64,000 nt of DNA, from assembly GCA_965649765.1 (NCBI GenBank), contig OZ287753.1:7440001-7504000 (forward strand), written 5' to 3'. Below, piece by piece: positions 19,181 to 64,000 of this stretch. A program made the translations under genes and the position numbers. The notes beneath the pieces were generated by a model. The model saw only the letters and a list, made by a program, of their open reading frames with translations. It ran no database searches and had not been told where the DNA came from. Numbering within the stretch: the stretch's first letter is position 1; each line of letters opens with the position of its first letter. The DNA is from Bispira polyomma (Eukaryota).

Positions 19181-19379
19181 ATAGAATAATATTGGGTATA
19201 AACAGGTTCTACATGCTAAGTATTGAACTATTACTGATGATGTCAGTCACCAGTCAGATTGCTACAAATAACATTTCTCAAACAGGGCAGTCTTAAGTAA
19301 AAACTTTAATTTGAGTTGGCTCAGCATCAGATTTAGTACTGTGGGACAAAAAGTAACAGGAGAGAAGGAACCAGACAGA

Positions 19380-23572: not shown

Positions 23573-23726
23573 NNNNNNNNNNNNNNNNNNNNNNNNNNNN
23601 NNNNNNNNNNNNNNNNNNNNNNNNNNNNNNNNNNNNNNNNNNNNNNNNNNNNNNNNNNNNNNNNNNNNNNNNNNNNNNNNNNNNNNNNNNNNNNNNNNNN
23701 NNNNNNNNNNNNNNNNNNNNNNNNNN
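23573..23726. other. Assembly gap (154 N)
   Basis: Run of n characters. Confidence 0.99.
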
Positions 23727-29016: not shown

Positions 29017-29195
29017 TTACTTATGATGGGTTAGGACGGTGCTCACTGGCGCCCTCTGCCCTCCAAGGTTTGGGGGATCAGCTGTCATGCTGCATTCAGT
29101 GCCTGTACTGCTGGCTGTATCAGTATCACTGTCTATGCTCTCTGTGTCCACGGATTTCTTCCTGCTCAGCCTCCTCTTGATCACATAGGCAGCAC
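29017..29195 (-). CDS. Gene B terminal exon: end of TM, stop-transfer and cytoplasmic tail
   Basis: [59 protein letters not shown]; acceptor cttccgttcag|. Confidence 0.88.
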
Positions 29196-32100: not shown

Positions 32101-35100
32101 GTTCTTTCCATACCAACCGTCTGTACAATTGCATTCATAGTTGGTCTGACTGGTCATGACACAGCTTGCTGAAAACAGGAAAAAAAAAGCTCAACACTTG
32201 TATCACAAGTAAACACAGAGAAAACAAATGATTTCTGAATGCCAAACACAATGAGGCATATATTTAATACATAACAATGTTCTTACTTGCGTTCTGACAT
32301 GGATTTGGATTATTGCACAAGTCCTTATCACTGCAGGTGTCTCCCTGCCAGCCTTCAGTACAACTGCAGGAGAAACTGTTGTCACCAACTGTGCAGTCCC
32401 CTCCATTGGCACATGGGTTTCCTGTACACTCATCAGTGTCAATGTTACACGTCTCTCCTTAAAAAAACATAAAAATAAGAAATCTAAAAAACCCATCTTA
32501 AAACAAATTTAAAATGTATTTCTTTAGAAGTCTAACATAATATATATGCCATTTTTGACCTATGTACTGTGTGACAGGCTTTAGAACATACAGTATATCC
32601 AAACAGAGAAACCTTGTTACCTGTAAATCCAGAATCACATGTACAGCTGAAACTCCCTGCTGAATTTGTACAAGACCCATGACCACAGGGATTGTTTGCA
32701 CACTCATCAATGTCTGCATCACACACTTCACCTGAAAACAACTGCAAGTTTACACTTTTCCTATACACAGAAACTTGACATAGACATTTTATGCATCATA
32801 GACACTATATACAAGAACAAAGTTAAGACAGCTAATTAAAACATCACGTCAATCAGTTACACAATCAGCGAAAGCCTAGCAGTATAGCAAATAATTAAAA
32901 TTACACTATATACAAGAACAAAGTTAAGACAGCTAATTAAAACATCACGTCAATCAGTTACACAATCAGCGAAAGCCTAGCAGTATGGCAAATAATTAAA
33001 ATTACAGTTAACATCTATTACTGTATTGGGCATAAGGTCACCTTACATTAAACAGTACATAATGTACTCTTTTATCTCACTTTTGACTTACCTCAAAATA
33101 CTTAAGTAAATCTAAAAAGTAAAATTAAGTCAACCTTAACTGAATTACCAACCTTAAGTTGACTCACCTCAAAACTTTATCAATCTTAAAGGAATTTAAG
33201 TCAACCTTAACTAAATTAAGGTGACTTGATAACCCCAACTTACCTTGAACTGTATACACAACCTGGTAGATATTAACGGGTGTAGGGAAACCATTTTGCA
33301 CAACACCTATATTATGTAATCAACTGTGTCAATGGATTTTTTTAAATAAATAATTTATAGCAGGCCCTATTTTTGTATTTGAATAAATATTAATCATTTC
33401 CCAAGAATATTTTGGGTTTCTTTCTTTGAGATGTATTTATTGACTGGTCTAACTGAATTAATTGAACACTTTGGATATAAATATAAATTAACATTGACAA
33501 AGAAAACTTTAAGAGGTCTTTATTGACAGGTCTCACTGTATTAACCATACATGGGGACAACTAAGGGAACTTCTTGGCTTCTTCATGCATATTTTTTCTC
33601 ATTAATGTACCTGTAAAGCCAGCAACACATTCGCATGAGAAATCGTCTACAAGATCAGTACAGACTCCTTCATTTTCACATGGCTCTTGAGCACAATCAT
33701 CAATATTGGTTTCACAGGTATCACCTAAAATCACAATTGTTAGTCATAATAATAATATACATGTATCACTAAACTATGCTCTTCAGAACAAATTAGTAAA
33801 AGTGGGAAATTTACTATATCACATCAATTAGTGTTTTAGTGATGTTTCTCAACCAGAAATACAATCTAAAATTAAAAAGTATGATGGTCAATCATTAAAA
33901 TAAATAAGTAACATCAAAGAGCAGGAATTGAGAGATTCAGCAACTACAAACATCCATTCGGTCTATGTTTACTTGGCCATCTCAAGAAAGTTACCAAGCA
34001 TGGCTAAATATACTCTTCACTAGACTTGGATAATAATGAACTTCTGATGTGGAAAAAGAGAAAAACTATTTTGGACACCACCTATATTATTAAAATAGTT
34101 GTGTAGAATGATTTTAAAAAATAAAACCATTTCTAATATGTGCTTTAATTTTTGTTTTTAAATAAATATCAATCCTTTTCCAAGGAATAATTTGGGGGTC
34201 TTTGTTTGAGAGTTATATTATGCAAATAGTTGTGTAGAATAATTTAAAAAAATAACATTTTCTAATATGTGCTTTAATTTTTGTGTTTGAATAAATATCA
34301 ATCATTTCCAAGGAATGTGTTGGGAGTTTTTGTTTAAGAGGTATTTATAGTCTGGTTTAACTGTATTAACTAAAAGCCTTGGATATAAATAGAAATTAAC
34401 ATTGACAAAGAACACATTGGGGTCTTTCTTTAACAGGTTTTTATAGACAGGTCTTACTGTATTAACCATACATGAGGGCAACTAAGAGAATTTCTTGGCT
34501 TCTTCATGCATATTTTTTCTCATTAATGTACCTGTAAAGCCAGCAACACATTCGCATGAGAAATCATTTACAAGATCAGTACAGATTCCTTCATTTTCAC
34601 ATGGCTCTGGAGCACATTCATCAATATTGGTTGCACAGGTATCACCTAAAATCACAATTGTTAGTCATAATAATAATATACTTGTATCATTAAACTATAC
34701 TTTTAAGAACAAATTAGTAAAAGTGGGAAGTTTACTATGTTTACTATGTTACATCAATTAATGTTTTAGTGATGTTTCTCACATTGAAATATAATCTAAA
34801 ATTAAAAAGTACGACGGTCAATCATTAAAATAAATAAGTAATATCAAAGATTAGGAATTGAGAGATTTAGCAACTACAAACATCTATTCAGTCTATGTTT
34901 ACTTGGCCATCTCCAGAAAGTTACCAAGCATGGCTAAATATACTCTTCACTAGACTTGTATAATAATGAACTTCTGATGTGGAAAAAGAGTAAAACTTTT
35001 TTGGACACCACCTATATTATTAAAAAATTGCGTAGAATGATTTTAAAAAATAAAACCATTTCTAATATGTGCTTAAATTTTTGTTTTTAAATAAATATCA

Positions 35101-38100
35101 ATCCTTTCCAAGGAATATTTTGGGGGTCTTTGTTTGAGAGTTAATGATAGTCTAACTGTATTAACTAAAAGCCTTGGCTATAAATAGAAAATAACATTGA
35201 CAAAGAACACATTGGGGTCTTTCTTTAAGAGGTTTTTATAGACAGGTCTTACTGTAATAACCATACATAAGGACAACTAAGGGAATTTCTTGGCTTTTTC
35301 ATGCATATTTTTTCTCATTAATTTACCTGTAAAGCCAGCAACACATTCGCATGAGAAATCGTCTACAACATCAGTACAGACTCCTTCATTTTCACATGGC
35401 TCTGGAGCACATTCATCAATATTGGTTTCACAGGTATCACCTAAAATCACAATTGTTAGTCAAATAATAATATACTTGTATCATTAAACTATGCTTTTCA
35501 GAACAAATTAGTAAAAGTGGGAAATTTACTATGTCACATCAATTAGTGTTTTAGTGATGTTTCTCACCTAGAAATACAATTTAAAATTAAAAAGTATGAT
35601 AGTCAAACATTAAAATAAATAAGTAACATCAAAGAGCAGGAATTGAGAAATTTAACAACTACAAACATCCATTCAGTCTATGTTTACTTGACGATCTCAA
35701 GAAAGTTACCAAACATGGCTAAATATACTCTTCACTAGACTTGGATAATAATGAACTTCTGATGTGGAAAAAGAGAAAAACTATTTTGGACACCACCTAT
35801 ATTATTAAAATAGTTGTGTAGAATGATTTTAAAAAATAAAACCATTTCTAATATGTGCTTTAATTTTTGTTTTTAAATAAATATCAATCCTTTTCCAAGG
35901 AATAATTTGGGGGTCTTTGTTTGAGAGTTTGAATTTGGATATTTAACGTCCACTCTAGTACCTTTTAGTAGGTTATATTGGGACGGGTAGTTGGAAATGC
36001 TGGAGGAAACACTTCATACAGCTGTTGTTTTTAAATAAATATCAATCCTTTTCCAAGGAATAATTTGGGGGTCTTTGTTTGAGAGTTTGAATTTGGATAT
36101 TTAACGTCCACTCTAGTACCTTTTAGTAGGTTATATTGGGACGGGTAGTTGGAAATGCTGGAGGAAACACTTCATACAGTCGGTCAAGGTTCTGCAGAGA
36201 AACCAGCGGCCCACAGTAAGGATCTACCACCTTTCCCACATAAGCATCGACGGGATTCGAACTCACGCCGCCCAGAGGTGAGAGACCAGTGATTGTGAAG
36301 CGCAATGCTTGCTAACCACGAGGCCACCGTGGCCCCTTCACTAGACTTGGATAATAATCAACTTCTGATGTGTAAAAAGAGTAAAACTATTTTGGACACC
36401 ACCTATATTATGCAAATAGTTGTGTAGAATAATTGAAAAAATTAACCATTTCTAATATATGCTTTAATTTTTGTGTTTGAATAAATATCAATCATTTCCA
36501 AGGAATGTGTTGGGAGTTTTTGTTTAAGAGGTATTTATAGTCTGGTTTAACTGTATTAACTAAAAGCCTTAGATATAAATAGAAATTAACATTGACAAAG
36601 AACAAATTTGGGTTTTTATAGACAACAGGTCTTGCTGTATTAACCATACATGAGGACAACTAAGGGAATTTCTTGGCTTCTTCATGTATATTTTTTCTCA
36701 TTAATGTACCTGTAAAGCCAGGAACACATTCGCATGAGAAATCATTTACAAGATCAGTACAGACTCCTTCGTTTTCACATGGCTCTTGAGCACATTCATC
36801 AATATTGGTGTCACAGGTATCACCTAAAATCACAATTTTAATCAATAATATTATACTTGTATCATTAAACTATGCTTTTCAGAACAAATTAGTAAAAGTG
36901 GGAAGTTTACTATGTTACACCAATTAATGTTTTAGTGATGTTTCTCACATAGAAATACAATCTAAAATTAAAAAGTATAACGGTCAAACATTAAATAAAA
37001 TAAGTAACATCAAAGACCAGGAATTAAGAGATTCAGCAACTACAAACATCCAGTCAATCTATGTTTACTTGGCCATCTCAAGAAAGTTACCAAGCATGGC
37101 TAAATATACTCTTCACTAGACTTGGATAATAATCAACTTCTGATGTGGAAAAAGAGTAAAACCATTTTTGACACCTCTTATAATATCGAAATAGTTGTTT
37201 AGAATGATTTTAAAAAACAAGATAAGAATAGAGTGGCCCTTGTGGGCCACATCATCAGTTGTTATGAAGGGGAGGGGCTGTAAATGTGGATAGGTAGTTG
37301 TTTATTGGTGTGAAAGGATTGAATTGTGGTGTGTAAAGGACTTTTGTTTTGTTAAAGAGGGCGAAGGTAAGATTTTAGTTGTGTTGTGAAGTGGGATATG
37401 AAGTGATGTTGTAGATGGAGATGTGAATTATGTTAGTGGATTATATGGTGAGTGTTTATTGTTTGTCTAAAGATAAGGTCAACGTGTTATGGTCGGAGAA
37501 GGTACAAGAATTGGTTGAGGGGTGTAGTGGGAGGGATGAGAAGCATAAGTTGATGAGGGTGCCGTAGCAAGATGTTGTGGTAGATTGCTGTTGTGCTTGG
37601 AAGGTGGCATTCATAGGTTGTAGCAATGTTTTATTTTGTGGTGATTGTATATTGATGTTGAAATCGCCATGGACAATGTAAGACCGAATGGGGGGTTGTA
37701 TTTGTTGTGTAAATTTTTTATGTCAGGTATGCTACAGTAATTTGCAGAGTATATGAGAACAATGACAATTGGATTAGAAGGCAGTTGTTGTAATTGTACA
37801 ATCCTGTATTAAAATGTGGGGGTGTTGAATTGATGATGGGACAACACTATGCATGAATTCAGTATATAAATGATTAATCCATGCGGAGGTCTAGTTGTGT
37901 GGCAATGATGGGTTTGGTTGTTTCTGATGCATGTAAAGTGGTCAATGTGGTATGATTGTTGGTCGGTAGGTTGAAGTCTGGATTCACATATGGTAATGAT
38001 GTCAGCGTCAGTGGAGATGCTAGAGAACTAAAAGCCTTGGATATTAATAGAAATTAACATCGACAAAGAACACATTTAGGTCTTTCTTTAAGAGGTTTTA

Positions 38101-41100
38101 TAGACAGGTCTTACTGTATTAACCATACATAAGGACAACTAAGGGAATTTCTTGGCTTCTTCATGCATATTTTTTCTCATTATTTTACCTGTAAAGCCAG
38201 CAACACATTCGCATGAGAAATCATTTACAAGATCAGTACAGATTCCTTCGTTTTCACATGGCTCTGGAGCACAATCATCAATATTGGTTTCACAGGTATC
38301 ACCTAAAATCACAATTGTTAATCATAATAATATTATACTTGTATCATTAAACTATGCTTTTCAGAACAAATTAGTAAAAGTGGGAAGTTTACTATGTTAC
38401 ATCAATTAATGTTTTAGTGATGTTTCTCACATAGAAATACAATCTAAAATTAAAAAGTACGACGGTCAATCATTAAAATAAATGAGTAATATCAAAGATT
38501 AGGAATTGAGAGATTTAGCAACTACAAACATCCTTTCAGTCTATGTTTACTTGACCATCTCAAGAAAGTTATCAAGCATTGCTAAATATACTCTTCACTA
38601 GACTTGGATAATAATCAACTTCTGATGTGGAAAAAGTGGAAAACATTTTTGGACACCACCTATATTATTAAAATAGTTGTGTAGAATGATTTTAAAAAAT
38701 AAAACCATTTCTAATATGTGCTTTAATTTTTGTTTTTAAATAAATATCAATCCTTTCCAAGGAATATTTTGGGGGTCTTTGTTTGAGAGTTATTGATAGT
38801 CTGGTCTAACTGTATTAACTAAAAGCCTTGGATATAAATAGAAATTAACATTGACAAAAAACACATTGGGGTTTTTCTTTAAGAGGTTTTTATAGACAGG
38901 TCTCACTGTATTAACCATACAGGAGGACAACTAAGGGAATTTCTTGGCTTTTTCATGCATATTTTTTCTCATTAATTTACCTGTAAAGCCAGCAACACAT
39001 TCGCATGAGAAATCATTTACAAGATCAGCACAGACTCCTTCATTTTCACATGGCTCTGGAGCACATTCATCAATATTGGTGTCACAGGTATCACCTAAAA
39101 TCACAATTGTTAATCATAATAATACTATACTTGTATCATTAAACTATGCTTTTCAGAACAAATTAGTAAAAGTGGGAAGTTTACTATGTCACATCAATTA
39201 GTGTTTTAGTGATGTTTCTAACCTAGAAATACAATCTAAAATTAAAAAGCACGACAGTCAATCATTAAAATAAATAAGTAACATCAAAAAGCAGGAATTG
39301 AGATATTCAGCAACTACAAACATCCATTCTGTCTATGTTTACTTAACCATCTCAAGAAAGTTACCAAGCATGGCTAAATATACTCTTCACCAGACTTAGA
39401 TAATAATCAACTTCTGATGTTAAAAGGAGTAAAACTATTTTGGACACCATCTATATTATGCAAATAGTTGTGTAGAATGATTTAAAAAATAAAACCATTT
39501 CTAATATGTGCTTTAATTTTTGTGTTTGAATAAATATCAATCCTTTTCAAGGAATATTTTGGGGGTCTTTGTTTGAAAGTTATTGATAGCCTGGTCTAAC
39601 GTTATTAACTAAAAGCCTTGGATGAAAATAGAAATTAACATTGACAAAGAACACATTGGGGTCTTTCTTTAAGAGGTTTTTATAGACAGGTCTCACTGTA
39701 TAAACATACATGAGGACAACTAAGGGAATTTCGTGGCTTTTTCATGCCTATTTTTTCTCATTAATTTACCTGTAAAGCCAGCAACACATTCGCATGAGAA
39801 ATCATTTACAAGATCAGTACAGACTCCTTCATTTTCACATGGCTCTTGAGCACAATCATCAATATTGGTTTCACAGGTATCACCTAAAATCACAATTGTT
39901 AATCATAATAATATTATACTTGTATCATTAAACTATGCTTTTCAGAACAAATTAGTAAAAGTGGGAAGTTTACTATGTTACATCAATTAATGTTTTAGTG
40001 ATGTTTCTCACATAGAAATACAATCTAAAATTAAAAAGTATGACGGTCAATCACTAAAATAAATAAGTAACATCAAAGAGCAGGAATTGAGAGATTCAGC
40101 AATTACAAACATCTATTCAGTCTATGTTTACTAGGCCATCTCAAGGAAGTTACCAAGCATTGCTAAATATACTCTTCACTAGACTTGGATAATAATGAAC
40201 TTCTGATGTGGAAAAAGAGTAAAACTATTTTGGACACCACCTATATTGTGCAAATAGTTGTGTTGAATAATTTAAAAAAATAAAACCATTTCTTATATGT
40301 GCTTTAATTTTGTGTTTGAATAAATATCAATCATTTCCAAGGAATATTTTGGGGATCTTTTTTACTGTATTAACCATACATGATGACAACTAAGCGAACA
40401 TCTTGGCTTCTTCATGCATATTTTTTCTCATTAATGTACCTGTAAAGCCAGCAACACATTCGCATGAGAAATCATTTACAAGATCAGTACAGACTCCTTC
40501 ATTTTCACATGGCTCTGGAGCACAATCATTAATATTGGTTTCACAGGTATCACCTAAAATCACAATTTTAATCATAATAATATTATACTTGTATTATAAA
40601 ACTATGCTTTTCAGAACATATTAGTAAAAGTGGGAAGTGTACTATGTCACATCAATTAGTGTTTCAGTGATGTTTCTCACCTAGAAATACCATCTAAAAT
40701 TAAAAAATACAACGGTCAATTATTAAAAAGAGGGAACATGAAAAAGCAGGAATTGAGAGATTCAGCTACTACAAACATCCATTCAGTCTATGTTTACTTG
40801 GCCATCTCAAGAAAGTTACCAAGCATTGCTAAATATACTCTTCACTATACTTGGATAATAATCAACTTCTGATTTGGAAAAAGAGTAAAACTATTTTGGA
40901 CACCACCTATATTATGCAAATAGTTGTGTTCAATGATTTAAAAAGACATTTCTAATATGTGCTTTAATTTTGTGTTTGAATAAATATCAATCATTTCCAA
41001 GGAATATTTTGGGGATCTTTTTTACTGTATTATCCATACATGATGACAACTATGCGAACTTCTTGGCTTCCTCATGTATATTTTTTCTCATTAATTTACC

Positions 41101-44100
41101 TGTAAAGCCAGCAACACATTCGCATGAGAAATCATTTACAAGATCAGTACAGACTCCTTCATTTTCACATGGCTCTGGAACACAATCATCAATATTGGTT
41201 TCACAGGTATCACCTAAAATCAAAATTTTAATCATAATAATATTATACTTGTATCATTAAACTATGCTTTTCAGAACAAATTAGTAAAAGTGGGAAGTTT
41301 ACTAAGTTACATCAATTAATGTTCTAGTGATGTTTCTTACATAGAAATACAATCTAAAACTATAAAGTATGATGGTCATGCATTAAAATAAATAAGTAAC
41401 ATCAAAGAGCAGGAATTGAGAGATTCAGCAATTACAAACATCCATTCAGTCTATGTTTACTTGGCCATCTCAAGAAAGTTACTAAGCATTGCTAAATATA
41501 ATCTTCACTAGACTTGGATAATAATCAACTTCTGATGTCGAAAAAGAGTAAAACTTTTTGGGACACCACCTATATTATTGAAATAGTTGTGCAGAATGAT
41601 TTTAAAAAATAAAACCATTTCTAATATGTGCTTTAATTTTAGTGTTTGAATAAATATCAATCCTTTCCAAGGAATATTTTGGGGGTTTTTGTTTGAGAGT
41701 TATTGATAGCCTGGTCTAACTGTATTAACTAAAAGCCTTGGATAAAAATAGAAATTAACATTGACAAAGAACACATTTAGGTCTTTCTTTAAGAGGTTTT
41801 ATAGACAGGTTCTACTGTATTAGCCATACATGAGAACAACTAAGGGAATTTCTTGGCTTCTTCATGCATATTTTTTCTCATTATTTTACCTGTAAAGCCA
41901 GCAACACATTCGCATGAGAAATCATTTACAAGATCAGTACAGATTCCTTCGTTTTCACATAGCTCTGGAGCACAATCATCAATATTGGTGTCACAGGTAT
42001 CACCTAAAATCAAAATTTTAATCATAATAATATTATACTTGTATCATTAAACTATGCTTTTCAGAACAAATTAGTAAAAGTTAGAAGTTTACTATGTTAC
42101 ATCAATTAATGTTTTAGTGATGTTTCTCACATAGAAATACAATCTAAAATTAAAAAGTACGACAGTCAATCATTAAAATAAATAAGTAATATCAAAGAGC
42201 ATCAATTTAGATATTCAGCAACTACAAACTTCCAATCAGTCTATGTTTACTTGGCCATCTCAAGGAAGTTACCAAGCATTGCTAAATATACTCTTCACTA
42301 GACTTGGATAATAATCAACTTCTGATGTAGAAAAAAAGTAAAACTCTTTTGGACACCACCTATATTATTAAAATAGTTGTGTAGAATGATTTTAAAAAAT
42401 AAAACCATTTCTAATATGTGCTTTAAATTTTGTTTTTAAATAAATATCAATCCTTTCCAAGGAATAATTTGGGGGTCTTTGTTTGAGAGTTATTGATAGT
42501 CTGGTCTAACTGTATTAACTAAAAGCCTTGGACATAAATAAAACTTAACATTGACAAAGAACACATTGGGCTCCTTCTTTAAGAGGTTTTTATAGACAGG
42601 TCTCACTGTATTAACCATACATGAGGACAACTAAGGGAATTTCGTGGCTTTTTCATGCATATTTTTCCTCATTAATGTACCTGTAAACCCAGCAACACAT
42701 TCGCATGAGAAATCATTTACAAGATCAGTACAGATTCCTTTATTTTCACATGGCTCTGGAGCACAATCATCAATATTGGTGTCACAGGTATCACCTAAAA
42801 TCACAATTTCAATCACAATAATACTATACTTGTATCATTAAACTATGCTTTTCAGAACAAATTAGTAAAAGTGGGAAGTTTACTATGTCACATCAATTAG
42901 TGTTTTAGTGATGTTTCTCACCTAGAATTACGATCTAAAATTAAAAAGCACGACAGTCAATCATTAAAATAAATAAGTAACATCAAAGAGCAGGAATTGA
43001 GAGATTCAGCAACTACAAACATCCATTCAGTCTATGTTTACTTGACCATCTCAAGAAACTTACCAAGCATGGCCAAATATACTCTTCTCTAGACTTACAT
43101 AATAATCAACTTCTGATGTTAAAAGGAGTAAAACTATTTTGAACACCATCTATATTATGCAAATAGTTGTGTAGAATGATTTTAAAAAATAAAAACAGTT
43201 CTAATATGTGCTTTAATTTTTGTGTTTAAATAAATATCAATCCTTTCCAAGGAATATTTTGGGGTTCATTGTTTTAGAGTTATTGATAGCCTGGTCTAAC
43301 TGTATTAACTAAAAGCCTTGGATAAAAATAGAAATTAACATTGACAAAGAACACATTGGGGTCTTTCTTTAAGAGGTTTTTATAGACAGATCTCACTGTA
43401 TTAACCATACATGAGGACAACTAAGGGAATTTCTTGGCTTTTCATGCATATTTTTTCTCATTAATTTACCTGTAAAGCCAGCAACACATTCGCATGAGAA
43501 ATCATTTACAAGATCAGTACAGATTCCTTCGTTTTCACATAGCTCTGGAGCACAATCATCAATATTGGTTTCACAGGTATCACCTAAAATCAAAATTTTA
43601 ATCATAATAATATTATACTTGTATCATTAAACTATGCTTTTCAGAACAAATTAGTAAAAGTGGGAAGTTTACTATGTTACATCAATTAATGTTTTAGTGA
43701 TGTTTCTCACATAGAAATACAATCTAAAATTAAAAAGTAAGACGGTCAATTATTAAAATAAATAAGTAACATCAAAGAGCAGGAATTGAGATATTCAGCA
43801 ATTAAAAACATCCATTCAGTCTATGTTTACTAGGCCATCTCAAGGAAGTTACCAAGCATTGCTAAATATACTCTTCATTAGACTTGGATAATAATGAACT
43901 TCTGATGTGGAAAAAGAGTAAAACTATTTTGGACACTATATTGTGCAAATAGTTGTGTTGAATAATTTAAAAAAACATTTCTAATATGTGCTTTAATTTT
44001 GTGTTTGAATAAATATCAATCATTTCCAAGGAATATTTTGGGGATCTTTTTTACTGTATTAACCATACATGATGACAACTAAGCGAACTTCTTGGCTTCT

Positions 44101-53100: not shown

Positions 53101-56100
53101 TCTGACCTGACCACAGTCCTGTCCACTCAAATAACAATTAAACCAGTTTGTCCACTGTATCCAGCAATCTGTCTTGAGGTCCGCTCAATGTCCACACAAT
53201 GCCTGTATCCTGCTATCCGTTCAGTGTCCATGCACACAAAATGTATATATCCAGAGAATCTGCACAACCAAGCTATCCAGTCCAGGATGCAAACACTATC
53301 CAATATGTAGTAAATCCAATCTCTGGTAGATCCACAACTTTTATCCAGTTCACTCCAATGAGTTCACCACAAAATGTATATAACAAACAGTTTATATCCA
53401 CAGTATAGTAGTTCATATAGAATTCATATAGCACCTCAGCTCCACTAACTCTCTTCTGTGGCCAGGCTGTCAACCCTTATATATACCACTGCTAGAGAAG
53501 GTTGCTAAAATGTGTAAGCAATTGCTAGGACATTCCAGAGATGAGATATACATATGAATACAACTTTAATAACCTTCAGAAATAAAATAGAACTGGTTTC
53601 TAGAATCTTAGGGGTTTCCCCAAATCTATCAATAGATCACTCCAGCAGAGTGTAAGACCATTAGTACTAACTAGACCGGATTTTCTTCAACACACCATAA
53701 TGTCCCCATATGTAACACCTCCCCCCTTAAAGAAAAATTTTGGAAGCCAAGGGGTTACAAAATTTCATATTACACAAAACATAAGTGAACATACAGTGTA
53801 CATATTGATCCATGAAACATTGTATTTTAAGTTACACAAGTAATATCCATAAGTAAACATCTAAGTTTTACAAGTTACAACTTTTCAGTTACTAACATAC
53901 AAAATAACCTTTAACTACAACTTCTTGATAGAGCATCAGCACAAATGTTATCCTTTCCTTTAACATGCTCTATTTGTAAACTGTATTCTTGCAAAACCAA
54001 ACTCCAATTCAATAGACGTCTGTTTTTGTTTTTCATTTTGTGCAAGAATACTAAAGGGTTGTGATCTGTGTACACAATAGTTGGTTTTGATGATGAAGAT
54101 ATATATATATCAAAGTGTTTAATGGCTAAAATGAGGGCTAAACATTCCTTTTCTATTGTAGAGTAATTCTTTTGATGTACGTTAAATTTTTTTGAAAAAT
54201 AACAAATGGGATGTTCAATATCTTCATCGTCAGTCTGCAGTAAAACTGCACCTGCCCCAACATCACTGGCATCCACAGCTAACCGAAATGGTCTATTGAA
54301 GTCTGGAGCAGTTAGTACAGGCTCCGAACAGAGAACATTTTTTACTTTGTCAAATGCTTTTTGACAAGTTTCAGACCAGTGATATTTTACGTTTTTTTCA
54401 AGAGCTCAGTCAGTGGAGCAGTGACATCTGAGAAATTTTTACAAAATTTCCTATAATAACCTAACATTCCCAGAAACCTCATTAAACTTTTCTTATTTCT
54501 AGGAATGGGATAGTCAATGATGCTTTCAACTTTTGCTTTAATTGGTGTCACAACTCCATGACCAACTACATGCCCTAAGTAAACAACCTTCGCTTTTACA
54601 AAGTCACTTTTCGATAGATTCACAGTAAGGTTGGCTTGCTTGAGCTGAAACAGAACTTGTTCAAGTCTTTTCAAATGTTCTTCCCAAGTATCACTAAAGA
54701 TGACAATATCATCCACATACACTTCAACCCCTTCTAAGTTCCTTAAACATATATTCATTAGTCTCTGAAATGTAGCTTGGGAATTTTTCATGCCAAATGG
54801 CATTACCTTGTACTGATACAGACCATCGGGAGTTACAAATGCTGATATTTCTTTTTCCAAAAGTTACCAAACATGGCTAAATATACTCTTCACTAGACTT
54901 GGATAATAGTCAACTTCTGATGTGGAAAAAGAGTAAAACTATTTTGAACACCACCTATATTTTGCAAATAGTTGTGTAGAATGATTTTAGAATATAAAAC
55001 CATTTCTTATATGTGCTTTAATTCTTGTGTTTGAATAAATATCAATCATTTCTAAGGAATATTTTGGGGGTCTTTCTTTGAGAGGTGTTTATAGTCTGGT
55101 CTAACTGTATTAACTAAAAGCCTTGGATATAAATAGCAATTAACATTGACAAAGAACAAGTTCGGGTCTTTCTTTAAGAAGTCTTTATAGACAGGTCCCA
55201 CTGTATTAACCATACATGAGGACAACTAAGGGAACTTCTTGGCTTCTTCATGCATATTTTATCTCATTAATGTACCTGTAAAGCCAGCAACACATTCGCA
55301 TGAGAAATCATTTACGAGATCAGTACAGACTCCTTCATTTTCACATGGCTCTGGAGCACATTCATCAATATTGGTTTCACAGGTATCACCTAAAATCACA
55401 ATTGTTAGTCATAATAATAATATACTTGTATCATTAAACTATGCTTTTCAGAACAAAATAGTAAAAGTGGGAAATTTACTATGTCACATCAATTAGTGTT
55501 TTAGTGATGTTTCTCACATAGAAATACAATCTAAAATTAAAAAGTATGATGGTCAAACATTATAAAAATAAGTAACATCAAAGAGCAGGAATTGAGAGAT
55601 TAAGCAACTACAAATATCCAGTCAGTCTATGTTTACTTGGCCATCTCAAGAAAGTTACCAAGCATGGCTAAATATACTCTTCACTAAACTTGGATAACAG
55701 TCAACTTCTGATGTGGAAAAAGAGTAAAACTATTTTGAACACAACCTATATTATGCAAATAGTTGTGCAGAATTATTTTATAAAATAAAACCATTTCTAA
55801 TATGTGCTTTAATTTTTGTGTTTAAATAAATATCAATCATTTCCAAGGAATATTTTGGGGGTCTTTCTTTGAGAGGTATTTATAGTCTGGTCTAACAGTA
55901 TCAACTAAAAGCCTTGGATATAAATAGAAATTAACATTGGGAAAGAACACATTGGGGTCTTTCTTTAAGAGGTCTTTACAATCAGGTCTCACTGTGTCAA
56001 CCATACATGAGGACAACTAAGGGAACTTCTTGGCTTCTTCATGCATATTTTTTCTCATTAATGTACCTGTAAAGCCAGCAACACATTCGCATGAGAAATC

Positions 56101-59100
56101 ATTTACAAGATCAGTACAGACTCCTTCATTTTCACATGGCTCTGGAGAACATTCATTAATATTGGTTTCACAGGTATCACCTAAAATCACAATTGTTAGT
56201 CATAATAATAATATATTTGTATCATTAAACTATGCTTTTCAGAACAAATTAGTAAAAGTGGGCAATTTACTCTATGTCACATCAATTAGTGATTCAGTGA
56301 TGTTTCTCACATAGAAATACAATCTAAAATTAAAAAGTATGACGGTCAATCATTAAAATAAATAAGTAACATCAAAGAGCAGGAATTAAGAGATTTAGCA
56401 ACTACAAATATCCAGTCAGTCTATGTTTACTTGGCCATCTCAAGAAAGTTACCAAGCATGGCTAAATATACTCTTCACTAGACTTGGATAATAGTCAACT
56501 TCTGATGTGGAAAAAGAGTAAAACTATTTTGAACACCACCTATATTTTGCAAATAGTTGTGTAGAATGATTTTAGAATATAAAACCATTTCTTATATGTG
56601 CTTTAATTCTTGTGTTTGAATAAATATCAATCATTTCTAAGGAATATTTTGGGGGTCTTTCTTTGAGAGGTGTTTATAGTCTGGTCTAACTGTATTAACT
56701 AAAAGCCTTGGATATAAATAGCAATTAACATTGACAAAGAACAAGTTCGGGTCTTTCTTTAAGAAGTCTTTATAGACAGGTCCCACTGTGTTAACCATAC
56801 ATGAGGACAACTAAGGGAACTTCTTGGCTTCTTCATGCATATTTTATCTCATTAATGTACCTGTAAAGCCAGCAACACATTCGCATGAGAAATCATTTAC
56901 GAGATCAGTACAGACTCCTTCATTTTCACATGGCTCTGGAGCACATTCATCAATATTGGTTTCACAGGTATCACCTAAAATCACAATTGTTAGTCATAAT
57001 AATAATATACTTGTATCATTAAACTATGCTTTTCAGAACAAAATAGTAAAAGTGGGAAATTTACTATGTCACATCAATTAGTGTTTTAGTGATGTTTCTC
57101 ACATAGAAATACAATCTAAAATTAAAAAGTATGATGGTCAAACATTATAAAAATAAGTAACATCAAAGAGCAGGAATTGAGAGATTCAGCAACTACAAAT
57201 ATCCAGTCAGTCTATGTTTACTTGGCCATCTCAAGAAAGTTACCAAGCATAGCTAAATATACTCTTCACTAAACTTGGATAACAGTCAACTTCTGATGTG
57301 GAAAAAGAGTAAAACTATTTTGAACACAACCTATATTATGCAAATAGTTGTGCAGAATTATTTTAAAAAATAAAACCATTTCTAATATGTGCTTTAATTT
57401 TTGTGTTTAAATAAATATCAATCATTTCCAAGGAATATTTTGGGGGTCTTTCTTTGAGAGGTATTTATAGTCTGGTCTAACAGTATCAACTAAAAGCCTT
57501 GGATATAAATAGAAATTAACATTGGGAAAGAACACATTGGGGTCTTTCTTTAAGAGGTCTTTACAATCAGGTCTCACTGTGTCAACCATACATGAGGACA
57601 ACTAAGGGAACTTCTTGGCTTCTTCATGCATATTTTTTCTCATTAATGTACCTGTAAAGCCAGCAACACATTCGCATGAGAAATCATTTACAAGATCAGT
57701 ACAGACTCCTTCATTTTCACATGGCTCTGGAGAACATTCATTAATATTGGTTTCACAGGTATCACCTAAAATCACAATTGTTAGTCATAATAATAATATA
57801 TTTGTATCATTAAACTATGCTTTTCAGAACAAATTAGTAAAAGTGGGCAATTTACTCTATGTCACATCAATTAGTGATTCAGTGATGTTTCTCACATAGA
57901 AATACAATCTAAAATTAAAAAGTATGACGGTCAATCATTAAAATAAATAAGTAACATCAAAGAGCAGGAATTAAGAGATTTAGCAACTACAAATATCCAG
58001 TCAGTCTATGTTTACTTGGCCATCTCAAGAAAGTTACCAAGCATGGCTAAATATACTCTTCACTAGACTTGGATAATAGTCAACTTCTGATGTGGAAAAA
58101 GAGTAAAACTATTTTGAACACCACCTATATTTTGCAAATAGTTGTGTAGAATGATTTTAGAATATAAAACCATTTCTTATATGTGCTTTAATTCTTGTGT
58201 TTGAATAAATATCAATCATTTCTAAGGAATATTTTGGGGGTCTTTCTTTGAGAGGTGTTTATAGTCTGGTCTAACTGTATTAACTAAAAGCCTTGAATAT
58301 AAATAGAAATTAACATTGACAAAGAACAAGTTCGGGTCTTTCTTTAAGAAGTCTTTATAGACAGGTCCCACTGTATTAACCATACATGAGGACAACTAAG
58401 GGAACTTCTTGGCTTCTTCATGCATAATTTATCTCATTAATGTACCTGTAAAGCCAGCAACACATTCGCATGAGAAATCATTTACAAGATCAGTACAGAC
58501 TCCTTCATTTTCACATGGCTCTGGAGCACATTCATTAATATTGGTTTCACAGGTATCACCTAAAATCGCAATTGTTAGTCATGATAATAATATACTTGTA
58601 TCACAAACTATGCTTTTCGGTGACGGGAGCAAGCGCGGTAGCAATTACCGGTTGCTTTGAGGTTGTAACAGGAAAAGACAAAAAGTTTCACTTAACAAAT
58701 TTATTTTAACAAATAAAATAACAATTACAGAATTACAAAATTATACAATTACAAAATTACAAAATTACAGTCAACTGAGATACCCTTAATAGCTCACACA
58801 ATAATACAATAATGAAATCAATCTGACCTGACCACAGTCCTGTCCACTCAAATAACAATTAAACCAGTTTGTCCACTGTATCCAGCAATCTGTCTTGAGA
58901 TCCGCTCAATGTCCACACAATGCCTGTATCCTGCTATCCGTTCAGTGTCCACGCACACAAAATGTATATATCCAGAGAATCTGCACAACCAAGCTATCCA
59001 GTCCAGGATGCAAACACTATCCAATATGTAGTAAATCCAATCTCTGGTAGATCCACAACTTTTATCCAGTTCACTCCAATGAGTTCACCACAAAATGTAT

Positions 59101-62100
59101 ATAACAAACAGTTTATATCCACAGTATAGTAGTTCATATAGCATTCATATAGCACCTCAGCTCCACTAACTCTCTTCTGTGGCCAGGCTGTCAACCCTTA
59201 TATATACCACTGCTAGAGAAGGTTGCTAAAATGTGTAAGCAATCGCTAGGACATTCCAGAGATGAGATATACATATGAATACAACTTTAATAACCTTCAG
59301 AAATAAAATAGAACTGGTTTCTAGAATCTTAGGGGTTTCCCCAAATCTATCAATAGATCACTCCAGCAGAGTGTAAGACCATTAGTACTAACTAGACCGG
59401 ATTTTCTTCAACACACCACAATGTCCCCATATGTAACACCTCCCCCCTTAAAGAAAAATTTTGGAAGCCAAGGGGTTACAAAATTTCATATTACACAAAA
59501 CATAAGTGAACATACAGTGTACATATTGATCCATGAAACATTGTATTTTAAGTTACACAAGTAATATCCATAAGTAAACATCTAAGTTTTACAAGTTACA
59601 ACTTTTCAGTTACTAACATACAAAATAACCTTTAACTACAACTTCTTGATAGAGCATCAGCACAAATGTTATCCTTTCCTTTAACATGCTCTATTTGTAA
59701 ACTGTATTCTTGCAAAACCAAACTCCAATTCAATAGACGTCTGTTTTTGTTTTTCATTTTGTGCAAGAATACTAAAGGGTTGTGATCTGTGTACACAATA
59801 GTTGGTTTTGATGATGAAGATATATATATATCAAAGTGTTTAATGGCTAAAATGAGGGCTAAACATTCCTTTTCTATTGTAGAGTAATTCTTTTGATGTA
59901 CGTTAAATTTTGTTGAAAAATAACAAATGGGATGTTCAATATCTTCATCGTCAGTCTGCAGTAAAACTGCACCTGCCCCAACATCACTGGCATCCACAGC
60001 TAACCGAAATGGTCTATTGAAGTCTGGAGCAGTTAGTACAGGCTCCGAACAGAGAACATTTTTTACTTTGTCAAATGCTTTTTGACAAGTTTCAGACCAG
60101 TGATATTTTACGTTTTTTTTCAAGAGCTCAGTCAGTGGAGCAGTGACATCTGAGAAATTTTTACAAAATTTCCTATAATAACCTAACATTCCCAGAAACC
60201 TCATTAAACTTTTCTTATTTCTAGGAATGGGATAGTCAATGATGCTTTCAACTTTTGCTTTAATTGGTGTCACAACTCCATGACCAACTACATGCCCTAA
60301 GTAAACAACCTTCGCTTTTACAAAGTCACTTTTCGATAGATTCACAGTAAGGTTGGCTTGCTTGAGCTGAAACAGAACTTGTTCAAGTCTTTTCAAATGT
60401 TCTTCCCAAGTATCACTAAAGATGACAATATCATCCACATACACTTCAACCCCTTCTAAGTTCCTTAAACATATATTCATTAGTCTCTGAAATGTAGCTT
60501 GGGAATTTTTCATGCCAAATGGCATTACCTTGTACTGATACAGACCATCGGGAGTTACAAATGCTGATATTTCTTTTGCCAAAAGTTACCAAGCATGGCT
60601 AAATATACTCTTCACTAGACTTGGATAATAGTCAACTTCTGATGTGGAAAAAGAGTAAAACTATTTTGAACACCACCTATATTTTGCAAATAGTTGTGTA
60701 GAATGATTTTAGAATATAAAACCATTTCTTATATGTGCTTTAATTCTTGTGTTTGAATAAATATCAATCATTTCTAAGGAATATTTTGGGGGTCTTTCTT
60801 TGAGAGGTGTTTATAGTCTGGTCTAACTGTATTAACTAAAAGCCTTGGATATAAATAGAAATTAACATTGACAAAAAACAAGTTCGGGTCTTTCTTTAAG
60901 AAGTCTTTATAGACAGGTCCCACTGTATTAACCATACATGAGGACAACTAAGGGAACTTCTTGGCTTCTTCATGCATATTTTATCTCATTAATGTACCTG
61001 TAAAGCCAGCAACACATTCGCATGAGAAATCATTTACGAGATCAGTACAGACTCCTTCATTTTCACATGGCTCTGGAGCACATTCATCAATATTGGTTTC
61101 ACAGGTATCACCTAAAATCACAATTGTTAGTCATAATAATAATATACTTGTATCATTAAACTATGCTTTTCAGAACAAAATAGTAAAAGTGGGAAATTTA
61201 CTCTATGTCACATCAATTAGTGTTTTAGTGATGTTTCTCACATAGAAATACAATCTAAAATTAAAAAGTATGATGGTCAAACATTATAAAAATAAGTAAC
61301 ATCAAAGAGCAGGAATTGAGAGATTCAGCAACTACAAATATCCAGTCAGTCTATGTTTACTTGGCCATCTCAAGAAAGTTACCAAGCATGGCTAAATATA
61401 CTCTTCACTAAACTTGGATAACAGTCAACTTCTGATGTGGAAAAAGAGTAAAACTATTTTGAACACAACCTATATTATGCAAATGGTTGTGCAGAATTAT
61501 TTTAAAAAATAAAACCATTTCTAATATGTGCTTTAATTTTTGTGTTTAAATAAATATCAATCATTTCCAAGGAATATTTTGGGGGTCTTTCTTTGAGAGG
61601 TATTTATAGTCTGGTCTAACTGTATCAACTAAAAGCCTTGGATATAAATAGAAATTAACATTGGGAAAGAACACATTGGGGTCTTTCTTTAAGAGGTCTT
61701 TACAATCAGGTCTCACTGTGTCAACCATACATGAGGACAACTAAGGGAACTTCTTGGCTTCTTCATGCATATTTTTTCTCATTAATGTACCTGTAAAGCC
61801 AGCAACACATTCGCATGAGAAATCATTTACAAGATCAGTACAGACTCCTTCATTTTCACATGGCTCTGGAGAACATTCATTAATATTGGTTTCACAGGTA
61901 TCACCTAAAATCACAATTGTTAGTCATAATAATAATATATTTGTATCATTAAACTATGCTTTTCAGAACAAATTAGTAAAAGTGGGCAATTTACTCTATG
62001 TCACATCAATTAGTGATTTAGTGATGTTTCTCACATAGAAATACAATCTAAAATTAAAAAGTATGACGGTCAATCATTAAAATAAATAAGTAACATCAAA

Positions 62101-63484
62101 GAGCAGGAATTAAGAGATTTAGCAACTACAAATATCCAGTCAGTCTATGTTTACTTGGCCATCTCAAGAAAGTTACCAAGCATGGCTAAATATACTCTTC
62201 ACTAGACTTGGATAATAGTCAACTTCTGATGTGGAAAAAGAGTAAAACTATTTTGAACACCACCTATATTTTGCAAATAGTTGTGTAGAATGATTTTAGA
62301 ATATAAAACCATTTCTTATATGTGCTTTAATTCTTGTTTGAATAAATATCAATCATTTCTAAGGAATATTTTGGGGGTCTTTCTTTGAGAGGTGTTTATA
62401 GTCTGGTCTAACTGTATTAACTAAAAGCCTTGGATATAAATAGAAATTAACATTGACAAAGAACAAGTTCGGATCTTTCTTTAAATAGTCTTTATAGACA
62501 GGTCCCACTGTATTAACCATACATGAGGACAACTAAGGGAACTTCTTGGCTTCTTCATGCATATTTTATCTCATTAATGTACCTGTAAAGCCAGCAACAC
62601 ATTCGCATGAGAAATCATTTACGAGATCAGTACAGACTCCTTTGTTTTCACATGGCTCTGGAGCACATTCATTAATATTGGTTTCACAGGTATCACCTAA
62701 AATCACAATTGTTAGTCATAATAATAATATACTTGTATCACAAACTATGCTTTTCAGAACAAATTAGTAAAAGTGGGAAATTTACTATGTCACATCAATT
62801 AGTGTTTTAGTGATGTTTCTCAAATAGAAATACAATCTAAAATTAAAAAGTATGACGGTCAAACATTGAAAAATAAGTAACATCAAAGAGCAGGAATTGA
62901 GAGATTCAGCAACTACAAACATCCATTCAGTCTACGTTTACTTGACCATCTCCAGAAAGTTACCAAGCATGGCTAAATATACTCTTCACTAGACTTGGAT
63001 AATAATCAACTTCTGATGTTAAAAGGAGTAAAACTATTTGGACACCATCTATATTATGTAAATAGTTGTGTAGAATGATTTAAAAAAAATAAAACCATTT
63101 GTAATATGTGCTTTAATTCTTGTGTTTGAATAAATATCAATCATTTCTAAGGAATATTTTGGGGGTCTTTCTTTGAGAGGTATTTAGAGTCTGGTCTAAG
63201 TGTATTCACTAAAAGCCTTGGATATAATTATGAATTAACATTGAGAAGGAACACGTTGGGCTCTTTATTTAAGAGGTCTTTACAGACAGGTCGCACTGTA
63301 TTAACCATACATGAGGACAACTAAGGGAACTTCTTGGCTTCTTCATGCATATTTTATCTCATTAATGTACCTGTAAAGCCAGCAACACATTCGCATGAGA
63401 AATCATTTACGAGATCAGTACAGACTCCTTCATTTTCACATGGCTCTGGAGCACATTCATCAATATTGGTTTCACAGGTATCAC
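29017..63484 (-). CDS. Gene B (5'-partial): giant type-I membrane protein with at least 36 EGF-like repeats (fibropellin/Notch-type calcium-binding EGF), furin site, TM helix and short cytoplasmic tail
   Basis: 31 array exons plus exons 32621-32731, 32287-32457, 31985-32168, 30601-30761, 29916-30044 and 29017-29195 splice in one open frame (4469 nt, about 1490 codons in the window). The N-terminus lies beyond 64000. Confidence 0.9.
29430..29915 (-). repeat. 68-bp minisatellite, 7 units, homologous to the TM-exon 3' end plus its 5' splice site
   Basis: cacttacc (minus-strand GGTAAGTG) recurs at 29436, 29504, 29572, 29640, 29708, 29773, a variant at 29842, and the real donor at 29909. Confidence 0.92.
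29916..30044 (-). CDS. Gene B juxtamembrane and transmembrane exon
   Basis: [43 protein letters not shown]; attttaccag| and |gtaagt; phase 1-1. Confidence 0.88.
30601..30761 (-). CDS. Gene B last (atypically spaced) EGF exon
   Basis: [53 protein letters not shown]; phase 2-1, |gtgagt. Confidence 0.9.
30910..30995 (-). pseudogene. Decayed partial copy of the gene B exon 32621 3' end and adjoining intron
   Basis: Aligns to 32571-32655; encodes [10 protein letters not shown] versus [12 protein letters not shown]. Confidence 0.7.
31056..31482. mobile_element. MITE (possibly PIF/Harbinger-like) with ~20-bp TIRs
   Basis: agcctggtcacacctacacat ... atgtgtaggtatgaccaggct; no clean TSD seen. Confidence 0.75.
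31985..32168 (-). CDS. Gene B EGF exon
   Basis: [62 protein letters not shown]; phase 1-2. Confidence 0.92.
32287..32457 (-). CDS. Gene B EGF exon (correct frame absent from the ORF track)
   Basis: [57 protein letters not shown]; 171 bp, phase 1-1, |gtaaga. Confidence 0.92.
32621..32731 (-). CDS. Gene B unique calcium-binding EGF exon
   Basis: [37 protein letters not shown]; 111 bp, phase 1-1. Confidence 0.92.
32802..33005. repeat. Near-perfect 101-bp tandem duplication
   Basis: acactatatacaagaacaaag... at 32802 and 32903, one mismatch seen. Confidence 0.92.
33611..63484 (-). CDS. Gene B: 31 tandem 114-bp calcium-binding EGF exons, consensus [38 protein letters not shown]
   Basis: Exon left coordinates (each +113): 33611, 34532, 35327, 36710, 38189, 38981, 39770, 40440, 41100, 41890, 42681, 43470, 44129, 46658, 47448, 48111, 48900, 49692, 50749, 51542, 51940, 52733, 55276, 56067, 56861, 57652, 58446, 60998, 61791, 62583, 63371. 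All have ttag|GT...CAG|gta boundaries, no stops or indels, and six Cys. Confidence 0.93.
35928..36336 (-). mobile_element. tRNA-derived SINE (36086-36336) plus a tandemly duplicated 3' part (35928-36021) in an array intron
   Basis: Minus-strand head GGGGCCACGGTGGCCTCGTGGTTAG (A box) ... GAGTTCGAATCC (B box); a 158-bp local duplication spans the SINE/intron junction. Confidence 0.88.
37218..38025 (-). mobile_element. Helentron-like 3' fragment: decayed C-terminal AP endonuclease plus terminal hairpin
   Basis: [11 protein letters not shown]...[10 protein letters not shown]...HGDFNIN...GTLINLCFS...FSDH, then a stop; hairpin GTGGCCC-TTGT-GGGCCAC at 37233-37250; ends CTTG|TTTTTT. Confidence 0.72.
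44611..46480 (+). mobile_element. 5'-truncated L2 LINE inserted antisense in an array intron
   Basis: RT ORFs 44586-45302 and 45212-46336; inserted at gcaaa|tagttg of the repeat unit; (TAA)n tail. Confidence 0.96.
50115..50364 (-). mobile_element. tRNA-derived SINE, same family as 36086, with a 17-bp TSD
   Basis: TSD cactagacttggataat at 50098-50114 and 50365-50381; A and B boxes present. Confidence 0.92.
52906..54858 (-). mobile_element. Ty3/Gypsy (Gmr1-like) fragment copy 1: RT-RNaseH, PPT, 3' LTR (52951-53717)
   Basis: MPFG, YVDD, DAS and ADALSR motifs then a stop; PPT AAGGGGGGAGG abuts TGTTACA; LTR ends TGTTACA; 1-bp frameshift near 54395. Confidence 0.93.
58619..60580 (-). mobile_element. 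Ty3/Gypsy (Gmr1-like) fragment copy 2: RT-RNaseH, PPT, 3' LTR (58664-59438)
   Basis: Uninterrupted 316-aa RT-RNaseH ORF 59632-60582; same junctions as copy 1. Confidence 0.93.
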
Positions 63485-64000
63485 CTAAAATCACAATTGT
63501 TAGTCATAATAATAATATACTTGTATCATTAAACTATGCTTTTCAGAACAAAATAGTAAAAGTGGGAAATTTACTATGTCACATCAATTAGTGTTTTAGT
63601 GATGTTTCTCAAATAGAAATACAATCTAAAATTAAAAAGTATGACGGTCAAACATTATAAAAATAAGTAACATCAAAGAGCAGGAATTAAGAGATTCAGC
63701 AACTACAAACATCCAGTCAGTCTATGTTTACTTGGCCATCTCAAGAAAGTTTCCAAGCATGGCGAAATATACTCTTCACTAGACTTGGATAATAGTCAAC
63801 TTCTGATGTGGAAAAAGAGTAAAACTATTTTGAACACCACCTATATTTTGCAAATAGTTGTGTAGAATGATTTTAGAAAATAAAACCATTTCTTATATGT
63901 GCTTTAATTCTTGTGTTTAAATAAATATCAATCATTTCCAAGGAATATTTTGGGGGTCTTTCTTTCAGAGGTATTTATAGTCTGGTCTAACTGTATTAAC

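Follow-up and report, generated by a model that had tools for sequence, protein, structure and literature searches.

A tandem array of 40 near-identical EGF exons in a predicted membrane-protein gene of Bispira polyomma

The stretch of DNA analyzed here (the window) comprises 64,000 nucleotides of contig OZ287753.1 in the Bispira polyomma assembly GCA_965649765.1 (C6:7,440,001-7,504,000; genome, 1.035 Gb), and its minus strand carries much of a gene whose epidermal growth factor (EGF)-like domains are encoded by a long tandem array of symmetric exons. An earlier interpretation made from the letters alone (the sequence-only reading) had described 31 or more exon-plus-intron units at this locus. 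Indeed, exactly 31 array exons, each of 114 bp, lie in the window between 63484 and 33611, their introns are repeated along with them, and every one is bounded by AG and GT, is of phase 1-1 and encodes six Cys without a stop, as had been claimed. Identity to the last copy is 91-100%. Nine further copies occur 162-8364 bases past the window end, so that the full array reaches 40 exons and the open-ended count was justified. The span originally given was 33290-64000; the gene's 3′ end, at 32731-29017, lies outside it.

The standard array intron is ~677 bp long and was duplicated together with its exon, giving a unit of 0.79 kb; in a genome-wide search, the only match to the repeat-unit DNA was the array itself. 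Comparison of exon and intron divergence among units, which the sequence-only reading had proposed, gave mean pairwise values of 3.5% for exons and 7.1% for introns. Distinct gap runs numbered 22 in introns and zero in exons, in agreement with the statement that the introns had taken indels. The exons encode 23 near-identical peptides, the most frequent of which is used ten times, and the array as a whole contains 378 D/E residues vs. 7 K/R (net charge ~-370, or ~-9 per repeat).

Extension of the array in both directions gave a predicted gene of 56 exons (6,648 nt; 2,215 codons) spread over 64.8 kb with no internal stop (Table 1). The model was searched exon by exon, and exons were joined only for checking the frame and counting motifs. 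The predicted layout is a signal peptide, two fibronectin type II (FN2) domains, 51 EGFs, an RQRRSR sequence, a transmembrane helix and a tail of ~53 aa. A look upstream for N-terminal domains, also proposed earlier, thus turned up the FN2 pair, and the single transmembrane helix supports the view of a single-pass cell-surface protein. Other candidates for the first exon were dropped since they fell inside a long interspersed nuclear element (LINE) or low-complexity repeat, or lay far upstream. Exons E3-E6, which adjoin the array upstream, show 77-91% mutual identity and have common flanks, a likeness left by an earlier duplication round.

A single array exon passes the Pfam EGF profile and stays under the cut-off for Pfam EGF_CA, since one exon splits the domain. 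The array repeat has the features of a calcium-binding EGF, including six Cys. The pattern used (D/N-x-D/N-E/Q before the first Cys, with D also accepted at the E/Q position, and D/N plus an aromatic residue between the third and fourth Cys) matched 47 times in the gene model. The broad consensus for O-GlcNAc addition by EOGT (PMC5388531) matched 42 times in the model, and those for O-fucose and O-glucose once each among the 51 EGFs.

Table 1. Features of the C6 gene, its array and its C8 paralogue (plain positions are those of the window; L001-L003 lie upstream of it along the gene).
Feature	Position	Strand	Remarks
Candidate first coding exon	L003:9727-9775	-	with 27-bp exon, signal peptide by eye
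27-bp exon	L003:8148-8174	-	with first exon, signal peptide by eye
FN2 exons, n=2	L003:5727-5921, 6879-7082	-	Pfam fn2 above cut-off
Non-array EGF exons E1-E6	L001:8866-9831, L002:1502-6221	-	upstream of array
Nine further array exons	L001:162-8364	-	past window end
Array intron leaving window	63485..64000	-	gene goes on past it
Array exons A10-A40 of 40	33611..63484	-	114 bp, introns ~677 bp; Pfam EGF
Array exon 5′ ends, A10 onward	63484, 62696, 61904, 61111, 58559, 57765, 56974, 56180	-	
Array exon 5′ ends, continued	55389, 52846, 52053, 51655, 50862, 49805, 49013, 48224	-	
Array exon 5′ ends, continued	47561, 46771, 44242, 43583, 42794, 42003, 41213, 40553	-	
Array exon 5′ ends, to A40	39883, 39094, 38302, 36823, 35440, 34645, 33724	-	
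One copy of 6,510-bp six-unit block	57734..64000		second copy past window; differences at 61703, 62821, 62953
Gypsy-type reverse-transcriptase fragment, ~1.76 kb	58800..60582 (limits approximate)	-	in array intron
SINE-like insertion, 267 bp	50115..50381		17-bp target duplication
LINE reverse-transcriptase fragment, 1,868 bp	44611..46478		in array intron
LINE-like insertion, ~0.8 kb	37226..38027		short endonuclease-like frames by eye; array intron
Unique EGF exon C1	32621..32731	-	111 bp, phase 1-1
EGF exon C2	32287..32457	-	
EGF exon C3	31985..32168	-	phase-2 donor
EGF exon C4	30601..30761	-	atypical, membrane-proximal
Juxtamembrane exon	29916..30044	-	RQRRSR and most of transmembrane helix
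Last coding exon	29017..29195	-	helix end, KRR stop-transfer, Ser/Thr/Asp-rich tail ~53 aa, stop
68-bp 'mirage' minisatellite	29426..29945	-	seven copies of transmembrane exon splice donor, real one included
'Mirage' minisatellite from first EGF exon end and donor	L002:5200-6110		
'Mirage' minisatellites from two FN2 exon ends and donors	L003:6170-6880, 5150-5730		
C8 paralogue with array	C8:58,115,540-58,175,215	-	

The introns record how the array grew. A block of six units (6,510 bp) is duplicated in tandem, its two copies being 99.95% identical with three substitutions between them. A Gypsy-type fragment occurs in three introns (the listed one, another at ~53100-54860 and a third past the window), and since the three are 99-100% identical, it was evidently copied along with the block. 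A short interspersed nuclear element (SINE)-like insertion likewise has a second copy (~35930-36360) at the same intron site, with the same 17-bp target, in a unit 15 positions away. Both LINE-like fragments in the array are single-copy insertions. The six element insertions counted earlier therefore stand as six sites; because the Gypsy-type and SINE-like ones recur at common sites, they amount to only four independent events. Nearest-neighbor intron distance is 0.4% among units of the 5′ half of the array, which is young, vs. 4.5% in the older 3′ half. The intron tree joins non-adjacent units, and four-gamete incompatibility climbs from 0.09 to 0.21 as sites lie farther apart along the unit, which argues for exchange between units. 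These results show that the array grew by repeated tandem duplication of the exon-plus-intron unit and of blocks of units, together with inter-unit exchange. The earlier claim of homogenization by unequal exchange is accordingly well supported by the duplicate block with its three differences, the shared insertions and the four-gamete trend. By analogy with LPA KIV-2, we infer that copy number changes in the DNA by unequal crossing-over, and length variation between alleles is likely.

Some further observations concern the elements themselves. The reading frame of the LINE fragment in the array is near-identical to that of a LINE copy at 18919-17723 of the window (region 17400-19200). The SINE-like element near 35928-36337 has a very high copy number: contig depth summed over it exceeded that of the flank by factors of tens of thousands to >100,000. 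Its end belongs to a local 158-bp tandem duplication.

Since an array of such similar units might be over-expanded during assembly, a condition that the sequence-only reading had itself named as fatal to its proposal, we consulted contig data from three runs of one study (type unrecorded), which cover the introns. Unique flanks had depths of ~13, 13 and 70-80 in the three runs, and array sites summed to ~18-50 times that; summed contig depth does not equal copy number, and it shows that many copies exist outside the assembly. The 6,510-bp block, at 99.95% likeness to its neighbor, might represent two haplotypes placed end to end. However, three substitutions separate its copies, the 3′ units are ~4.5% from their nearest relatives, which disfavors over-expansion, and the short-read contig depth points to tens of copies. 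On the strength of depth and 3′ divergence, we rejected an artefact of the whole array; a real array much shorter than the assembled one is exceedingly improbable. Doubt attaches to no more than six of the 40 units, those of the near-identical block, and the chance that they are spurious is small.

Variation among the exons was markedly constrained. The 40 exons contain 28 distinct variants, 20 replacement and 8 silent, none of which creates a stop or changes a Cys; under the substitution spectrum of the introns, the chance of seeing no stop or Cys variant is P ~0.007. In the 30 units with a standard intron, 26 exon variants were observed vs. 53 expected at the intron rate. These data show that purifying selection preserves every array exon. 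Considering both the missing stop and Cys variants and the overall deficit, the array is translated, or was until recently. Constitutive inclusion of the exons is also favored because none has decayed, as a freely skipped exon could.

The unique exons downstream of the array led to a paralogue on chromosome C8. The best other genome matches to exons C2 and C3 were C8:58120193-58120357 (64% identical) and C8:58119237-58119410 (48%), and the only other matches to exon C4 and to the transmembrane exon were C8:58117423-58117584 (53%) and C8:58115540-58115641 (61% over residues 1-34; E 0.013); no homologue of the last coding exon was found in the exon-wise search. The four matches are collinear on one strand (58,120,357-58,115,540). 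An EGF array begins 7 kb upstream of them and comprises ~20 periods of 2,073-2,080 bp, with three EGF exon matches per ~2,074-bp period (~60 EGFs in all) that are ~53% identical to the C6 repeat. Since the C6 and C8 genes were built from different cassettes, the paralogues expanded independently. A genome search with FN2 gave no match near the C8 gene, whose head may thus differ from FN2. A third large and regular EGF exon array occupies C10:51,617,000-51,699,000 (minus strand; dozens of near-identical matches). The arrays on C8 and C10 probably have homogenized introns as well, to judge from their regular spacing and from scores and frame lengths that recur unchanged. These recurring arrays lower the uniqueness of the C6 locus. 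More clusters of repeated EGF exon matches were seen at C5:60,659,000-60,670,000 and C2:106,446,000-106,497,000. On C9 (36,837,700-36,841,200, minus strand), an open frame of 1,368 codons holds 13 FN2 matches, many spaced by 276 bp with identical scores, and appears to be a homogenized FN2 array within one exon.

Outside this genome, relatives were harder to find. The use of the unique transmembrane and tail region for finding orthologues, as advised by the sequence-only reading, gave no outside orthologue and led only to the C8 paralogue, through the transmembrane exon. Exon-by-exon searches with the tail and with the atypical EGF exon C4 gave no match, blanks that carry little weight since the word search reaches only proteins of similar length and the exons are short. 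The FN2 exon matched generic FN2 proteins only, at ~31-52% identity; EGF domains accompany FN2 in a few of them (in coral and prawn; one has four EGFs, two FN2s and a transmembrane segment), never in the order of the C6 gene, and an Atlas search returned generic EGF clusters. The FN2-EGF-transmembrane architecture was unmatched in the searches made.

Candidate families were rejected on their defining domains. The C6 protein resembles the Notch, Delta, Serrate, DNER and DLK1 class in its Notch-type calcium-binding EGFs and single helix, but differs in its FN2 head, in having homogenized rather than divergent repeats, in almost lacking O-fucose and O-glucose sites, and in the absence of LNR, ankyrin and DSL. 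Unlike Notch, with its LNR/NOD and ankyrin regions, it passes from the last EGF through a short linker into the helix and then a tail of 53 aa that matches no Pfam profile. The MNNL and DSL of Delta and Serrate are replaced at the N-terminus by the two FN2 domains, and no further open exon was found upstream of these. The tail ends in LTHHK, not the ERLI of Crumbs, and the model has no LamG exon. The earlier exclusion of Notch and Crumbs therefore stands, as LNR, ankyrin, ERLI and LamG are all absent from the model. Fibropellins, secreted proteins with C1s-like and avidin-like domains (PMC10336842), were set aside because of the FN2 head and transmembrane end, and a Dscam-type array was set aside since exons only 3.5% apart on average, ten of them encoding one peptide, show no diversification.

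The nearest analogies lie in mechanism and form. With coding exon-intron variable-number tandem repeats of the LPA KIV-2 type, two of four defining features were compared and both were found: the unit is a whole exon plus intron, and the copies are near-identical through their introns, as after recent duplication or exchange. In human LPA, the exon-intron unit of kringle IV type 2 (KIV-2) measures 5.6 kb and is present 1 to >40 times (PMC6314250). Both systems thus use a near-identical coding repeat, in up to ~40 copies, that sets protein length (PMC6314250, PMC11462820). However, the LPA unit is a two-exon kringle, the LPA protein is secreted and its copy number is proven to vary between alleles, whereas the C6 unit is a one-exon EGF in a membrane protein read from one assembly. 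The sea-urchin egg bindin receptor EBR1 (PMC13672419), like the C6 protein, is a large surface protein of an invertebrate in which near-identical repeat exons form a lineage-specific run, but these encode CUB-TSP1, number six and belong to a gene expressed in eggs; the C6 gene has 40 EGF copies. Fibropellins and octovafibrin (PMC10336842) are EGF rods of marine invertebrates (up to 21 and 29 EGFs) with binding-domain caps, but they are secreted and capped by C1s-like/avidin or C-type lectin domains rather than by an FN2 head with a transmembrane helix, and the EGFs of octovafibrin, unlike the C6 repeats, do not bind calcium. Drosophila dumpy (PMC2930355) likewise encodes a giant tether that is rich in EGFs and anchored in the membrane; it resembles the C6 gene in its symmetric exons, in concerted evolution driven by unequal crossing-over and in modification by EOGT, which is predicted for C6, and differs in that its homogenized repeats lie within one exon, in its DPY and ZP domains and in its demonstrated alternative splicing.

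Taken together, we propose that the array encodes a constitutively spliced stalk of an acidic spacer protein, with its length altered in the DNA by unequal crossing-over, a reading to which we give an even chance. The product would be a functional membrane protein of type I, made up of a signal peptide, two FN2s, 51 EGFs, a furin-type site, a helix and a short tail, and the array exons are probably spliced in constitutively. Tandem calcium-binding EGFs form a stiff rod of ~2.5-3 nm per domain, and the repeats would accordingly make a calcium-stiffened, strongly acidic rod of ~130-150 nm for 51 domains, probably modified with O-GlcNAc. FN2 is a collagen/gelatin-binding module in vertebrates; the rod may serve as a spacer or tether that keeps the FN2 pair, as a matrix-binding head, off the cell. 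The furin consensus is R-x-K/R-R, which RQRR fits, and a cut there could free the rod into the matrix. Because the C8 paralogue made a stalk of similar size from another cassette, stalk length, rather than repeat sequence, may be the functional trait. Among the roles suggested by the sequence-only reading, that of a spacer fits best. Several points weigh against this proposal. An RNA run carrying the gene was looked for and none was found, so that expression and splicing are predicted; no orthologue was found in the exon-wise searches; and furin cleavage, the FN2 ligand and the stiffness of the rod are all inferred. In addition, the excess of synonymous changes among exon variants falls short of significance (P 0.17), and this genome is generally rich in arrays and in minisatellites at splice sites, which means that the growth may be mutational.

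This last point leads to the alternative that the array is a tolerated mutational expansion within a functional gene, in which a duplication-prone genome multiplies symmetric exons and selection removes broken exons while remaining indifferent to length. Such a view, which we consider rather unlikely but worth serious attention, gains from the presence of three or more arrays of EGF exons genome-wide, from four splice-donor minisatellites within the C6 gene alone and from the amino-acid changes accepted at non-Cys positions of the exons. However, in two paralogues one and the same region was lengthened to a similar extent (40 and ~60 EGFs) from unlike cassettes, which fits, and does not prove, selection on length. 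The sequence-only reading had instead envisaged an accordion-like receptor, varied in length by exon skipping and between alleles, with a possible part in recognizing self/non-self or gametes. Every array exon is symmetric, making in-frame skipping possible; the gamete receptor EBR1 has near-identical repeat exons (PMC13672419), and dumpy, another gene rich in EGFs, undergoes alternative splicing (PMC2930355). Nevertheless, skippable exons should tolerate damage and none of the 40 has decayed, so their intactness speaks for constitutive inclusion instead. Recognition fares no better, since only length could vary among repeats so alike: 23 near-identical peptides, the commonest occurring ten times, offer little diversity to recognize, and the FN2 head is single-copy, with no close paralogue in the genome. 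For the unique 3′ exons, the three runs of one study listed no sequence differences, a weak point as the runs may derive from the same animal. We regard this reading as improbable.

Two narrower functions were also weighed. EGF-plus-transmembrane proteins such as DNER, DLK1 and Drosophila weary are models for a non-canonical Notch ligand or modulator, here one shed at the basic site. The closest solved relatives of the repeat are EGFs of Notch1 and DLL1, and the protein is predicted to cross the membrane once with a basic juxtamembrane site. However, Notch likeness is generic for calcium-binding EGFs, exons for DSL, LNR and ankyrin are absent from the model, and one O-fucose and one O-glucose consensus among 51 EGFs would be a meager endowment; we hold this role to be very improbable. 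Scarcely more credit, indeed marginally less, is due to the idea that the acidic rod acts chiefly as a polyanion binding calcium or mineral in the matrix of a cuticle, tube, shell or glue. The net charge of the array, the possible shedding site and the tandem-EGF structural proteins of octopus egg threads and the sea-urchin apical lamina (PMC10336842) speak for it, whereas calcium-binding EGFs are usually acidic anyway and the transmembrane helix and tail have been retained. Returning to the spacer proposal, a bolder version would have the C6 and C8 genes belong to an undescribed family of shed-able EGF stalks, in which a spacer of 100-200 nm is rebuilt time and again, independently in each paralogue, from different exon cassettes, allele-specific or splice-controlled length tunes the distance of adhesion or recognition, and duplication hot spots at exon edges feed the process; this we think unlikely.

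Exon edges are indeed duplicated elsewhere in the C6 gene, where four ladders of splice donors form 'mirage' minisatellites, a term taken from work on amphioxus (PMC3087553). These ladders, which follow the transmembrane exon, the FN2 exons and the first EGF exon, match the amphioxus type; the main C6 array, unlike that type, copies whole exons with both splice sites, and so adds domains. Apart from the gene, the window contains a run of N letters at 23573-23726 and, at 3034-9164, a minus-strand neighbor gene in which TSP1-like (9164-8898), EGF (8202, 3188) and CUB-like (~3840-3580) segments were recognized by eye. The mitochondrial sequence of the genome uses the invertebrate mitochondrial code; in C75:3364-7704, mitochondrial cox2 comes shortly after cox1, and their flanks, which carry no long protein frame on that strand, seem to hold rRNA-like and non-coding sequence.

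In most domain-repeat expansions, the introns have diverged past recognition. Domain repeats are thought to expand by duplication of symmetric exons, and exon duplication is the route to be expected for EGF repeats (PMC1553488); the C6 array catches such growth in progress, with 40 units and shared insertions that order the events. The mechanism is already known from LPA KIV-2 and EBR1, while the FN2-EGF-transmembrane architecture and the parallel expansion in paralogues appear to be new. The array is real, functional-looking and larger than first reported. Two paralogues that carry long stalks made from different cassettes provide a natural test of whether length in this family is selected or tolerated.

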